From: Macrostomum lignano
Taxonomy: Eukaryota
Assembly (NCBI GenBank): GCA_002269645.1
Contig: NIVC01001032.1
Location: 1 to 62,008 of the forward strand
Reading direction: 5' to 3'
Length of the DNA: 62,008 nt
The position numbers and the translations under genes were made by a program. The notes under the pieces were generated by a model. That model made no database searches. It saw only the letters and a list, made by a program, of their open reading frames with translations, and was not told the origin of the DNA. Shown here one piece after another: positions 89 through 12,027 of the stretch. The first letter of the stretch is position 1, and each line of letters begins with the position of its first letter.

Positions 89-3000
89 ACTTCTAGTGAC
101 AACGATTGGTCCTACGTCGCCATTGTGATCGAAGCTGAGGACGGAGCAGTGAGGCTGTCCCAAGCTCTAGTCGATGTCCAAGGCCGATCAAAAGTCTGCT
201 TCCCGATCGTCATCCACTCACGTCCAGTAATGCGACGGCAGCTGCAAAAGCTCTCAGGAACTTCGTGTATCCCGACATTCCCCGACTGCACTGTCGTATA
301 TTCCGGATCCGGGAGCACATTTCTGTCGCTCTGGACCTCGTCACGGGCTTGGATGCATTGACAGCCGACTTGGAAAAGAGATATCAGCTTGTGCTGGTTG
401 GAGACGCTCTGGAAGCTTCTACCGAGCGACCAACTCGACGAGACGGCGACACTTTGGTCTCGGAACACTTTTTGTGTTTCCAGGAGTTCTTGACCCGAAT
501 CCGGCGTCGGACAGTCTAGCGGTGCTTCTGAAAAACATCAGCAGCACACCCGGAATCGATGGGAGAGTTTCACCGACTTACGGACACTTGTCACGACTGC
601 AGCATTTCAAGAGCACAACAAGTGAGCAGTGCGACTGGACGAAATTCGGTGACCTGTGCTACACCCAAGCACTGATTTACGACTTCAGCTGCTGTCATTC
701 TTGCCGCTCATTGGCTCCGCCCTCGACTTTTCGCCAAGCGGAGTGGCGAGTCTCCGCCGGAAGAGCGTCAGTTTGTCCGGTTTACTGCCGTTCTTGAGTG
801 CGCGTTTTGACGCGCGTTTTCGCAAAACTTCACCGACTACTCACTCGCCAGAGGCTTGAGCCACAGAGATCGAGGCTTTTGGCAACCGATCGTAAAAGTG
901 TACCAAGCCGGTTTGATTACGATCGGAGGCGATCCTGGAAAAGCTGGCGAGTTAAGGATAGTGCAGGCCGGCTCAGCGAACCAGAACTACGAGTGGGACT
1001 TGAGCACGATGCCCGAGCTGTACGAGTTCAGGGGCGGAAATCCTGACAATCTTCCTGTTAAGGCAGTCAGTGGCAGCTCCGTGTGCCCGCGGAGCTGCCC
1101 CGAGTGCTCAAAGTATCGAGGCAAGCAGTCTGTTGAGTATCAGTTCGGCGACCTTACATTGGCGCGTTGATCCCAGTGTTTAATAGGGCAACGGATGTGT
1201 ACAAATGCAGCGACGGGAACTTTGATGAGCAATCGACTGAGTGGTCTACAGCTTTTCGATACGTTATTAAACTTGCGGCTTGGGCCAGCGAAGGCGGCGC
1301 AACTCCACCCCCTGGCGTTGATGCCTCCCTGGTTGATAAACAGTTCATGCTCGACTGAGGGACCTAGTCTCGAAGGTTCAGCGAGTCGAGTACTAAGCTA
1401 AAATGGGGCTACGTAATTCTTGACAGTTGCTATTCAGCGCCCTCCTGACGAACAGGCTAGCTTTGTTGCTAAATGGCAAGCTGGAGCCTTTAACTGGGCT
1501 TAACTATACCAAGTTCGTAGGCTTTATTGGAAAGCCTCCAGCACTCAAAACGATGGCGGCTAGCCAGGTGCTCAAGCAATACAGCCTGCCTATTATTAGC
1601 TTTGCGTCAACATCAACAGCTCTGAGCGACGTCTTTCAATATCCGTTCACAATGAGGACAGTGTCATCAGACAACGAGATTATTGAGGCTATGATGACTA
1701 TACTAAGGCACTACAATGTCGATTTGATTACAGTTGCTTATGCACCAAACGCTTACGGCTTATCGCTTCGCGACGCAATGTTGACCAGAGCCAACCGAGA
1801 TGGAGTCTGCATCGCCAAACTGCTGGTACTGAATTGCGCTTACACAGATACGGTCTGCAAAAGAAATCTAGCAAACGATATGCGCAGGCCAGGAACTCGA
1901 TATGTAGTATTTCTATGCGACTCCGTCGACCTCGCCGCATTTCTTAACTACACTGAGGTAAAACGTTTTTAGGTTTCGAATCTCCATATTTTCTTTTGAA
2001 TTTTTTTAGCACCTAATCTATCCATGGTTTCAATTTTTAGGTGGAATCAGACCTCGAATTTATAAATATTTTGGCAACTGAAGACATCGACGAGGTGATG
2101 TTTACGGGAAAAAACAATCTCGGTGTGGGAACCACCATGGTGCAGCTGGTCTCCGCTCCTGAGCCGGGATTCCTCAACTACCTCAACTACTCGCTGACAC
2201 GCATGCCCCCGAACTCCAACAACTTGTCCCAGTGGGACCGACTGTACTTCGAGCTGGTGCACCAGTGCTACCTCACGGACAGCTTTGTGCGCAGTGATAA
2301 GTACACCCAGCCGTGCTTGCCCAGCATCGTCGCGTCGCATCACATTCGCCAGCTCGAGTCCCGATCCGTGTTCGTCATGACGGCGACTCAGACGCTGATC
2401 CTCGGTTGCCTGACGGCAATCGACTACTTGTGTCCGGTGGTGACGCCCGAGCCGGCGTGTCCGAACTTCTTCAAAGGCGACAGCGTCACACAGGAGCAGC
2501 GAGCCAACCTCATCATGTACGGCAGCCGGCTGAAGCCGTCCGGAACCACAGCGCAGCGGTTCTCGGCAAATACGGAGGCGAGGAGTGGTCCTTCCAGAAG
2601 ATCTTCGAGAACCGGATGGGTCGGACGCCGATGCGGCTGATGCAGTACCGGAAGATCGGCTCGGCGGAGTACCGCTTCGTGCAGGTGAGTGTCTCACTAT
2701 TTTTGAATCGCGTGTGGGAACTTTTTGGGAGAGTTTAGTCACGACAATATTCGAAATGTGTAATGAAGAAACTACCGTACCAAGAAATATTTATTGACAC
2801 TGATTCATTTCTTAATGAGGTAGGGAATGAAGAGCAAAGTTTTTTATTCAGTTTATTTTAGAAAACCATGAGGTGGATTTCTGTATTTAGGTATTTAGAC
2901 AAATGGATACGTACATGCATTTAGTGGTAAAATGAGCATTAACACAGGAATCTACGGAGTATTATTTTCGTTAGACGAGCGTATGATGGGCGCCCAATCC

Positions 3001-3553
3001 GCTGTCTCCGGAGCTCCTCAATACTGTTCGCAGGCAGGCACGCCCACACAGACTTTTGACATTTGATTTTTCTTTGCCACCCCAAAATCAACCCAGTTCG
3101 GCCTATTCGACGGCGTGAGCAAATCGAATTTCGCTGAGTCAGCTGAGAAGCTGTTTGCTCAAGAGCGTCAAGTCAACCCGAGTCCAGCCAAAGTCTGTCG
3201 TCGGCGGAAGATTGCGGCCATCCCAAATGCGTGAACAGCATCAGCCAGTCGGCTGCATCAACCGAATCGGGCGTCATCACTCCCAGACCTGCACCGTCGC
3301 CTGCGCTTGGCCTCCTAGGCCTTCTATTCCTTCCGGAGTTCTTGTGGGAGTGATCATCTTTTGGTGCCTTCGGCGGCTGATCCCTAATTTTGGGAGCAGC
3401 GAGTCGGATTACGCCTACGGTGATAGAGCGACCACCGAATTGCCTGAAGTTTCTACGATGGGGCGAGAGAATAGAGATTCAGGTTTGTACGATACCGCCT
3501 TTGACACGGGCACAGAATCGGGCCGTGCTCTGCCAGCGATCAAAGCGTACTAA
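89..3553 (+). pseudogene. VFT (ANF-receptor/mGluR-like) single-pass receptor, copy 1; frameshifted; exons ~89-1957, 2041-2684, 3097-3553; 5' end upstream of window
   Basis: Near-identical to 8067-10676 over two blocks but broken by many 1-2 nt deletions (e.g. gtgacaacg vs gtgaccaacg). ORF pieces carry LPIISFASTSTALSD..YPFTMRTVSSD (mGluR VFT motif). GT-AG junctions at 1958/2040 and 2685/3096. Last exon has a hydrophobic stretch (GVLVGVIIFWCL) and a Tyr-containing tail ending TAA 3553. Could be an intact gene with assembly errors. Confidence 0.75.
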
Positions 3554-11600: not shown

Positions 11601-12027
11601 GGGACTACTAGACGAAGTGTTTCTAGTGGTCCTTGTAAGACAGACAGACAGACAGACAGACAGACAGACAGACAGACAGACAGACAGACAGACAGACAGA
11701 CAGACAGACAGACAGACAGACAGACAGACAGACAGACATACAGACAGACAGACAGACATACAGACAGACAGACAGACAGGCAGACAGACAGACAGACAGA
11801 CAGACAGGCAGGTGGCCACCCTTCACCCCACCAGCCTTCCAGTCCAGTCGGATTCCTATTACTATTGCGACCCGGATGTGACAACGGGCGGCAGCTCGGG
11901 TGCAGCAGTGTCACGGAAGTTGCCGACGTTGCCGCAGGAGGAGCCGCCGACGCCGAAGAGGCGCGTATTTCGTGCACTGGATGCGAGCGACCCCACCACG
12001 GAGCCCGTCCCACCGGCGGGGGATTAG
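5664..12027 (+). CDS. VFT single-pass receptor, copy 2; exons 5664-5721 (signal peptide), unresolved ~7130-7958, 8067-9945, 10032-10676, 10994-11391, 11835-12027
   Basis: MWLRLRRVGLLSFAWVLLT signal-like exon with GTGAG donor. LLVTNDWSYVAIV and GDIYIGAILPIF...LPIISFGSTSTALSNVFQYPYTMRTLSSD VFT motifs. One TM (LALLGLLVLLFIPGILAGVLVA). Phase-consistent splice sites from 8067 to TAG 12027. The 7130-7958 part needs frameshifts or has stops and is not resolved. Confidence 0.8.
5754..7047. mobile_element. Non-autonomous TIR element (hAT-like CAGTGTTGGG end) with subterminal CCGGAAGTTAC repeats
   Basis: Left end cagtgttgggcaaagttccggcacttccgg; right end aagtgccggaagttac...gaagttacttccca. Repeated ccggaagttac at both ends. 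Sits in intron 1 of VFT copy 2. Confidence 0.5.
11639..11810. repeat. (GACA)n microsatellite
   Basis: Direct inspection; intronic. Confidence 0.95.

Follow-up and report, generated by a model that had tools for sequence, protein, structure and literature searches.

Venus flytrap receptors and the Macrostomum locus

Glutamate, GABA-B, calcium, taste and pheromone receptors sense their ligands through Venus flytraps (VFTs), and the wiring of one such module to different outputs is a central question of receptor evolution. The window analysed here, the whole 62,008-nucleotide stretch of Macrostomum lignano contig NIVC01001032.1 (assembly GCA_002269645.1, forward strand), contains at positions 1-12027 two tandem paralogs on the + strand, the products of which join two serial flytraps (VFT1 and VFT2) to a single transmembrane (TM) helix. 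M. lignano is a free-living flatworm (Platyhelminthes, Macrostomorpha). Both genes very probably encode type I membrane receptors, composed of a signal peptide, two VFTs, Cys motifs, one TM helix and a short tail, both acidic and rich in Tyr, and devoid of any enzymatic or heptahelical domain, which would represent an unnamed family born by tandem duplication of a unit made of a class C-type VFT and a Cys motif.

Among the described systems, the metabotropic glutamate receptors (mGluRs) and the other G protein-coupled receptors (GPCRs) of class C resemble these proteins in their canonical flytrap, since VFT2 keeps the α-amino-acid residues and its best matches listed from the PDB are mGluRs; moreover, at the place where the Cys-rich domain of mGluRs starts, the flytrap is succeeded by a Cys motif. 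Unlike mGluRs, the present proteins have two flytraps in series, a three-Cys motif in place of the nine-Cys NCD3G domain, and one TM helix instead of seven; thus, of the three class C hallmarks, the flytrap was found, while the other two, the Cys-rich domain and 7tm_3, were not. Venus kinase receptors (VKRs) share the class C-type flytrap and the single TM helix, and their ligands are likely amino acids (PMC3703292, PMC4038586); however, the proteins described here have two flytraps, no tyrosine kinase and a short or disordered tail, the stop lying 48-60 aa past the TM helix.

Two other systems carry flytraps without an intrinsic output. NPR-C (NPR3) combines an ANF_receptor-type ectodomain with one TM helix and a short, enzyme-free tail, and is the precedent for a “silent” receptor (PMC10334801); it has one flytrap and a peptide ligand, whereas the present proteins are nearer to mGluRs in sequence, the likeness being of architecture only. 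SmGBP of Schistosoma mansoni is a flatworm mGluR-like flytrap, which lacks the seven-helix domain (7TM) and binds glutamate; unlike the Macrostomum proteins, it is a single flytrap of about 55 kDa, which lacks the Cys linker, the C-terminal TM helix and the tail (PMC3206071). The original prediction, a reading of this DNA from its letters alone, had listed 7TM, guanylyl cyclase, ion channel and tyrosine kinase as the normal partners of a VFT; NPR-C (PMC10334801) and SmGBP (PMC3206071) make that list incomplete.

Two serial flytraps before a membrane anchor are also found in the bacterial BvgS/EvgS (PMC4352136), but BvgS belongs to another flytrap class and carries a histidine kinase. DCBLD1/2 are catalytically empty single-pass proteins, with YxxP tails that are phosphorylated by FYN/ABL and bind CRK/CRKL (PMC8015000); they are a vertebrate family, built on an ectodomain of other origin (CUB, LCCL, discoidin), and the likeness is a functional analogy only. 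The literature searched for single-pass animal receptors with tandem or double flytraps yielded only BvgS/EvgS, the trypanosome cyclases, VKR and SmGBP.

Two tandem receptor genes

The 1195-aa paralog P0003 matches exactly two loci in the window by tblastn, at 107-3207 and 7377-11380, both on the + strand, and the 704-aa open reading frame (ORF) at 8074-10188 matches four M. lignano proteins with 49-99% identity. Copy 2 was modelled using P0002 and P0003 as guides, with two 1-nt corrections; it comprises six exons with GT..AG borders and codes for a product of 1175 aa, which is laid out as signal peptide, module 1 (about 520 aa), the C-x3-C-x2-C linker CPRSCPEC, module 2 (about 500 aa), Cys motif, helix and tail, with 9 N-glycosylation sequons in the ectodomain. 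Copy 1 is cut by the window edge, so that its 5′ third is missing and it begins within the large exon. The features are as follows, a slash marking the cut at splice sites.

78-1083, + strand: copy 1, C-terminal two thirds of VFT1; frame broken by many 1-bp indels
1084-1107, + strand: copy 1, linker CPRSCPEC between the modules
1108-1957, + strand: copy 1, N-terminal part of VFT2, in the same exon as VFT1; FASTSTALS 1601-1627, MRTVSSD 1652-1672
2041-2684, + strand: copy 1, exon for the C-terminal part of VFT2, then donor CAG/GTGAGT; 98.6% identical to 10104-10682
3097-3553, + strand: copy 1, last exon, with the CGHPKC stalk (3213-3230), TM helix (about 3303-3370), DYAYGD (3407-3424), DSGLYD (3476-3493) and stop
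5664-5721, + strand: copy 2, exon 1, with start codon and signal peptide MWLRLRRVGLLSFAWVLLT; modelled on P0002/P0003
7341-7500, + strand: copy 2, exon 2, start of VFT1; frame disrupted at 7355 by one G too many in a GGG run
7586-7958, + strand: copy 2, exon 3, VFT1 lobe 1; one base short near 7893 compared with P0002, frame confirmed by P0003
8056-9945, + strand: copy 2, exon 4, with the remainder of VFT1 (8056-9069), CPRSCPEC (9070-9093) and, at 9094-9945, the N-terminal part of VFT2
10032-10676, + strand: copy 2, exon 5, C-terminal part of VFT2
10994-11395, + strand: copy 2, exon 6, with stalk, TM helix (11189-11245), tail and TGA (11393-11395)
11093-11128, + strand: copy 2, second Cys motif in the stalk, CRTQAECDSPEC, a C-x5-C-x4-C variant
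11835-12027, + strand: candidate optional terminal exon, read from the sequence; putative, adding SLPVQSDSYYYCDPD... and a second YxxP

P0003 is 48% identical to copy 2 exon 4 over 643 aa. The M. lignano UniRef protein P0001 is 100% identical, over its residues 706-814, to copy 1 at window positions 2041-2367; its identity with the preceding exon of copy 1 is about 88% (tblastn), with local indels such as GFIGKPPALK versus GFIGEASSTQ.

The reading frames of both copies are interrupted. The alignment of copy 1 at 76-1109 with copy 2 contains 22 gap positions, mostly of 1 bp in homopolymers and clustered at the window start; the region 78-1083 is 95% identical to copy 2 at 8054-9095, and the tblastn matches switch frame repeatedly. 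Two further frameshifts are present in the last exon of copy 1, as seen in three-frame translation. At the two corrected sites of copy 2 (7355 and about 7893), the conserved frame is kept by UniRef P0002 and likewise by the paralog P0003. The 22 gap positions in about 1 kb of copy 1, those added by its last exon, and the two 1-nt corrections that copy 2 requires would also be expected from decaying pseudogenes, whose frameshifts would be genuine, function being left to other paralogs alone. This seems improbable to us, since the indels are mostly single bases in homopolymers grouped at the window start, no in-frame stop is found once they are bridged, P0001 and P0002 carry the same sequence in an intact frame, and the ratio of nonsynonymous to synonymous substitution (dN/dS) between the copies is far below 1. 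In addition, M. lignano has three near-identical subgenomes, and its long-read assemblies derive from the inbred line DV1 (PMC10733133); for this reason the frameshifts in both copies are read as assembly errors, which is highly likely, although not proven. The indel pattern at 76-1109 is of a type typical for a poorly polished long-read assembly near a contig end.

Comparison of the two copies revealed a mosaic. They are nearly identical in the blocks 8056-9094 and 10104-10676 (proportion of synonymous differences, pS, 0.08 and 0.05, respectively), while in block 9095-10103, corresponding to the N-terminal lobe of VFT2, synonymous sites are saturated (pS about 0.8, with a nonsynonymous proportion, pN, of 0.25); the N-terminal part of VFT1 is only 35-43% identical at the protein level. 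Purifying selection acts between the copies, dN/dS being about 0.05-0.2 in the converted blocks. The mosaic divergence therefore indicates old paralogs, which gene conversion has homogenised everywhere outside the lobe-1 regions, and the divergence spared there may reflect divergent ligand specificity.

A family shared with molluscs and a brachiopod

An exhaustive HMMER search with P0003 as query against 1.84 billion representatives returned 1830 matches at E <= 1e-3, and architectures were counted in the best 150 of these 1830 representative clusters. Exactly two flytrap matches with exactly one later TM helix were found in 38 of the best 150; a linker of the form C-x(2-6)-C-x2-C lies between the flytraps in all of them (38/38), and a second copy precedes the TM helix in 29/38. 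Named members are found in bivalves (Saccostrea, Solemya, Potamilus, Sinanodonta, Dreissena, Mercenaria and Tegillarca, with a partly matching Mytilus protein), in gastropods (Haliotis, Aplysia, Lymnaea, Plakobranchus, Bulinus, Batillaria and Nucella) and in the brachiopod Lingula, which has two paralogs; molluscs have many. The Macrostomum proteins share with them the linker, the Cys motif before the TM helix, the single TM helix and the domain-free tail. Thus, the family is not flatworm-specific, but comprises molluscs, Lingula and Macrostomum.

In the databases the members are named “uncharacterized”, “hypothetical” or, automatically, “mGluR-like”, and no paper describing the family was found, the term “undescribed” being provisional because the literature searched was incomplete. 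The suggestion of a possibly undescribed family, made in the original prediction, holds in that the family is real and conserved, and it widens to molluscs and Lingula. Some receptor surveys drop sequences without seven helices (PMC6307864), which may be in part why the family escaped notice.

The tails of the 38 strict members range from 18 to 755 aa, with a median of 200. Two members, of 1131 and 1317 aa, come from 3.7-6 kb contigs of sequencing-run assemblies, and are very likely transcripts, as the contigs are barely longer than the coding sequence. Both end without an output domain, so that the lack of such a domain is borne out by these probable transcripts at the level of the family, not for the window's own genes.

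The other protein searches, with the window ORF, a 24-sequence alignment or a bivalve member as query, returned close relatives only, their word filter having passed over the family, and it was the exhaustive search that revealed it. Matches of 2000-3900 aa, such as the Polypterus “CASR” P0006 (3171 aa) and P0017 (3927 aa), are fused models of tandem receptor arrays and no genuine multi-flytrap proteins. Giant fused models of this kind, with 5-10 flytrap matches, outrank true relatives in searches ranked by summed score.

The two flytrap modules

The second module, which the original prediction had called strongly mGluR-like, is indeed so, well beyond chance. The strings that it had quoted were found on the + strand (GDIYIGAILP at 9133-9162, GSTSTALS at 9592-9615 and RTLSSD at 9643-9660), and Pfam recognizes ANF_receptor (PF01094) in both copies, with E 5.3e-23 in copy 2 and E 1.2e-22 in copy 1 (ORF 1427-1972). 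In a sequence search of the PDB, mGluR1/5 were on top for P0003 (E 3e-20) and mGluR5 for copy 2 (E 6e-16); all the best 60 PDB matches listed are class C, with mGluRs first and T1R and CaSR after them. In the AlphaFold2 model of P0003 the predicted local distance difference test (pLDDT) score is 80-92 across residues 550-980, and Foldseek aligned the VFT2 of this model to mGluR ligand-binding domains with E 3e-28, a target-normalised TM-score up to 0.86 and a root mean square deviation of 3.4 Å.

In the alignment with mGluR5, VFT2 retains the Ser (GDLSST), Thr (STST), Asp (SSD) and Tyr (AYG), and has a Glu at the position of the mGluR lobe-2 Asp. These residues are kept throughout the family alignment (n=24), with S in 21/24, T or S in 22/24, D in 18/24 and Y in 23/24 sequences. 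VFT2 is thus a canonical class C flytrap, in which the α-amino-acid-binding residues are retained; the significance of this motif, and especially of Ser165, is stated in PMC3703292. As VFT2 retains the residues that hold an α-amino acid, its ligand would be an amino acid or a small molecule of that kind.

Identification of the first module required the mollusc relatives. Macrostomum VFT1 is not recognized by Pfam, the best being a faint match with E 0.075; a profile built from Macrostomum sequences only found nothing meaningful among PDB sequences (best E 0.57, a designed protein), and hhalign of Macrostomum-only alignments gave no match between VFT1 and its own VFT2 (probability 0.2%). Mollusc and Lingula members instead have a canonical VFT1, seen by Pfam as a second ANF_receptor stretch, and in molluscs the two modules are clearly duplicates of each other (hhalign, 452 columns, E 3e-64). 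When aligned with mollusc VFT1, Macrostomum VFT1 matched with an hhalign probability of 97-98% (E 1e-10 in local mode, 211 columns; 5e-14 in global mode, 470 columns). The match is position-specific: by hmmsearch, Macrostomum VFT1 scored 2.6e-8 against the mollusc VFT1 profile and 3e-3 against that of VFT2, while Macrostomum VFT2 scored 2e-61 against the VFT2 profile and 7e-29 against that of VFT1.

The structure of VFT1 was modelled on a substring of P0002, which is 99% identical to copy 2. AlphaFold2 was confident for lobe 2 only, with pLDDT about 80-90 at residues 170-270 and lower values up to about 300; in this lobe the β-α-β order is the same as in VFT2. Among the 50 matches that Foldseek listed there are none but class C flytraps, from mGluRs and calcium-sensing receptors, with E 2.5e-12, probability 1.00, TM-scores of 0.37-0.48 and about 500-560 aligned columns; since mollusc rows were used in the alignment for the model, this result supports the assignment but does not test it independently. 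Module 1 is thus supported as a divergent flytrap only through the mollusc homologues and the low-confidence model. The two serial VFTs joined by CPRSCPEC of the original prediction were therefore recovered for the second module by Pfam, PDB and Foldseek, while for the first the direct Pfam and PDB searches failed and the mollusc route was needed; likewise, structure prediction returned the VFT fold for VFT2, and at low confidence for VFT1. The amino-acid-binding signature is retained in mollusc and Lingula VFT1s and is absent from Macrostomum VFT1, where, for example, the Tyr is changed to Gly in all copies.

One membrane helix and no output domain

A single hydrophobic helix was detected, as predicted, with a Kyte-Doolittle mean of 2.83 at aa 1108-1126 of copy 2, the next segment reaching 1.69. 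The tail of copy 2 measures 48-49 aa up to the first stop, KYTGKPIPVRPCNCDSESDKGEDYYYYADPESQDSTAANGFDNPAGPR, and includes EDYYYYADPE at 11312-11341; that of copy 1 is about 60 aa long, has a different sequence with DYAYGD and DSGLYD, and is then closed by a stop. The Tyr clusters reported for these tails are therefore present, DSYYYCD excepted (see below), whereas the tail length of about 70-130 aa was overestimated. In the paralogs P0003 and P0005 the last exon is the same, with stalk, TM helix, tail and an immediate TGA, and unrelated genes lie downstream.

No 7TM, kinase or cyclase match was found by Pfam in the proteins, in which only flytrap families (ANF_receptor and a related periplasmic-binding-protein family) rose above noise; the + strand ORFs of at least 40 aa in 3400-5650 and 11400-32300 contain no Pfam domain, these three included, and the tails of six long-tailed relatives gave nothing but sub-threshold matches. 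No NCD3G, the nine-cysteine domain, was found even at E <= 10, and only C-x(2-5)-C-x2-C motifs are present. The absence of 7TM, kinase and cyclase from the proteins and from the downstream ORFs thus agrees with the original prediction.

It might also be that ordinary class C GPCR or VKR genes have here been modelled too short, their 7TM or kinase exons being located farther off, and double-VFT proteins with a 7TM are indeed predicted in amphioxus and in one starfish. Such an explanation is extremely improbable, because a stop codon lies right after the tail in copy 1, copy 2, P0003 and P0005, only 2.1 kb separate the stop of copy 1 from the start of copy 2, and the 20 kb downstream are without a Pfam match, while the paralogs are flanked by unrelated genes; moreover, the same ending recurs in dozens of independent gene models and in the two transcript-sized contigs.

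The amphioxus and starfish proteins are predicted class C GPCRs, which resemble the present family in having two serial flytraps, in their case ahead of a 7TM. The amphioxus protein (P0070, Branchiostoma, 1307 aa) stands for a cluster whose six sequences come from B. floridae, from B. lanceolatum and from a hybrid, B. floridae x B. japonicum, and has, like the present family, a Cx3CxxC motif after VFT1 and a Cys motif before the 7TM, with no normal Cys-rich domain; the starfish one (P0103, Acanthaster) is of 1418 aa. Their VFT1s fit the mollusc VFT2 profile better than that of VFT1, and for the starfish VFT2 the two profiles give about the same score. A shared origin of these deuterostome proteins and the spiralian family was considered and is not supported, since their VFT1 prefers the mollusc VFT2 profile. 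No paper on amphioxus or starfish double-VFT GPCRs was found.

The stop of copy 2 sits inside a consensus 5′ splice site, CAG/GTGAGC (11389-11397, cut at about 11391/11392), and an acceptor, CACCCCACCAG/C (in its context CCCTTCACCCCACCAG/C, 11820-11840), lies about 440 nt downstream, in frame with an ORF containing a second YYYxDP. Splicing from the stop-overlapping donor into 11835-12027 could generate an alternative, longer tail. The peptide of this candidate exon has no significant homologue in the window or at the P0003 locus. DSYYYCD, which had been counted among the tail motifs, belongs to this ORF (DSYYYCDPD at 11851-11877) and lies past the stop codon and past an (AGAC)43 microsatellite at 11638-11811, so that it is not part of the tail as modelled. 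The idea that this ORF is a homologous, duplicated piece of tail was discarded, as the similarity covers 9 aa only (E about 1-2.4).

The tail tyrosine motif

Motifs of the form Y[ILV]xP occur at 27 sites in 24/37 non-flatworm tails, versus 3.4 +/- 1.8 sites, and never more than 10, when the tails were shuffled 1000 times. For plain YxxP the enrichment in the tails is about two-fold, and for YxN, YxxPhi and NPxY it is not convincing. The consensus is [D/S][D][D/P]-Y-[I/L]-[T/H/N/S]-P, with D or E at positions -3 to -1 in 19/27 sites. The D-Y-I-T-P-like motif is the sole conserved element of the mollusc tails (e.g., P0023, P0040, P0066, P0088 and P0166), and the tails of the relatives are disordered. 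In Macrostomum, YxxP appears as YADP in copy 2 (within EDYYYYADPE), YDVP in P0005 and YCDP in the ORF past the stop, while the tails of copy 1 and P0003 have acid-flanked tyrosines and no Pro.

To our knowledge, NPR-C has no Tyr motif of the Y[I/L]xP kind. Presumably, Y[I/L]xP also fits the preferences of SH2 domains of the PLC-gamma, SHP2 and RasGAP type. Crk-type SH2 domains dock at YxxP, and their specificity for pYxxP is older than the animals (PMC5043372). The enrichment of Y[ILV]xP indirectly supports the proposal, put forward in the original prediction, that these receptors could signal through phospho-Tyr adaptors, the signalling mechanism as such being our inference.

Proposed mechanism

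In the reading that we tentatively favour, although it may well be wrong, the proteins would be phosphotyrosine scaffolds, with ligand sensing by VFT2 and docking at the tail tyrosines. The ligand of VFT2, held by its Ser, Thr, Asp, Tyr and acidic residues, would be an amino acid or a comparable small molecule, whereas the Macrostomum VFT1, which has lost the signature, is probably a structural or regulatory module. If class C GPCRs, VKRs and NPRs are a guide, closure of the flytraps in a dimer would shift the TM helices together with the tails; cytosolic kinases of the Src/Abl type could then phosphorylate the acid-flanked tail tyrosines (YxxP in Macrostomum, Y[I/L]xP in the relatives), and the phosphorylated tails may recruit SH2 proteins that read YxxP. 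The model for such a tail is given by the DCBLD scaffolds, which signal by this route (PMC8015000). The partner classes that we assume for this step are Crk, Nck, RasGAP and PLC-gamma. A broader form of this proposal, namely that the family is an undescribed receptor class, which couples class C-type amino-acid sensing to phosphotyrosine/SH2 signalling through the conserved Y[I/L]xP, with two flytraps possibly integrating two ligands, is conceivable but rather unlikely as a whole.

Several observations weigh against the scaffold reading. Tails of 18-755 aa cannot be aligned apart from the tyrosine motif, and this motif is not strictly shared, because in Macrostomum YADP and YDVP are without I/L, and copy 1 and P0003 are without any YxxP. 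The VFT1 models have low confidence, with a mean pLDDT of 56.9 and TM-scores not above 0.48, and had mollusc rows in the alignment. Finally, neither window copy has an intact reading frame as assembled.

The main rival is that of a silent receptor or co-receptor, which would bind its ligand without signalling on its own, serving either as a sink that internalises the ligand or as a modulatory partner, joined by its flytraps to class C GPCRs or VKRs in a heterodimer. Class C flytraps function as dimers, and NPR-C with NPR-A/B, as well as GABA-B1, which relies on GABA-B2, offer comparisons for the co-receptor. The tail is short and no catalytic domain is present, and some members have tails of only about 18-23 aa; NPR-C, made of a VFT, one TM helix and a short tail, clears its ligand and inhibits cyclase receptors (PMC10334801). 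However, the acid-flanked Y[I/L]xP is kept in tails that otherwise evolve freely, which argues that the tail is read, and many members have tails of 200-750 aa; we consider a silent role unlikely, although it deserves more weight than any other alternative.

The flytraps, notably the degenerate VFT1, could also serve as adhesion or protein-protein modules of a scaffold molecule, without a ligand, as the amino-terminal domains of ionotropic glutamate receptors are protein-protein interaction modules. The loss of the binding signature from Macrostomum VFT1, the large ectodomain with its 9 N-glycosylation sequons and the disordered, scaffold-like cytoplasmic regions speak in favour of such a role. 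It is nonetheless distinctly unlikely, as the binding residues are kept in VFT2 family-wide, and in the VFT1 of molluscs and Lingula, which is hard to explain without a small ligand. On balance, the identity of the proteins as tandem-flytrap, single-pass receptors and their working mode as phosphotyrosine scaffolds form, taken together, the best overall explanation, in which our confidence falls slightly short of even.

Genomic surroundings

Long (AGAC/GACA)n microsatellites are located at 11638-11811, 23053-23405 and 28234-28954, and together with many other tandem arrays they make up most of the 20 kb that separate the receptor genes from a CYFIP homologue (about 14.5-32 kb); the extreme GC/AT skews and the “RQTD”/“CLSV” ORFs are due to these microsatellites and arrays. 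The repeat-rich region also contains a tRNA gene at 19739-19811 on the − strand (Rfam RF00005, 57.8 bits), and a run of N, marking an assembly gap, lies at about 30540-30850. Farther on, the − strand carries exons of the CYFIP homologue (32390-34811, FragX_IP E 4e-113) and of a PAICS-type AIR carboxylase (57937-58350, E 2e-22), both housekeeping neighbours unrelated to the receptors. A 594-aa ORF at 52505-54289, again on the − strand, is composed of about 15 tandem PKP[VIL]C.DK[EN]V-like units and a coiled-coil-like C-terminus, and has no Pfam match.

Significance

The precedents of NPR-C and SmGBP temper the novelty of flytraps without an intrinsic output. If true, the proposed mechanism would give Venus flytraps one more mode of transduction, in addition to G proteins, intrinsic kinases and cyclases, and ion channels. 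The family offers a testable new output mode for class C-type flytraps and a natural two-site sensor. Macrostomum represents a natural experiment, as one flytrap has lost the binding signature, while the other retains it. The members are candidate chemosensory or nutrient receptors in tractable animals, such as Macrostomum, where RNAi and transgenesis are available, Aplysia and Lymnaea.

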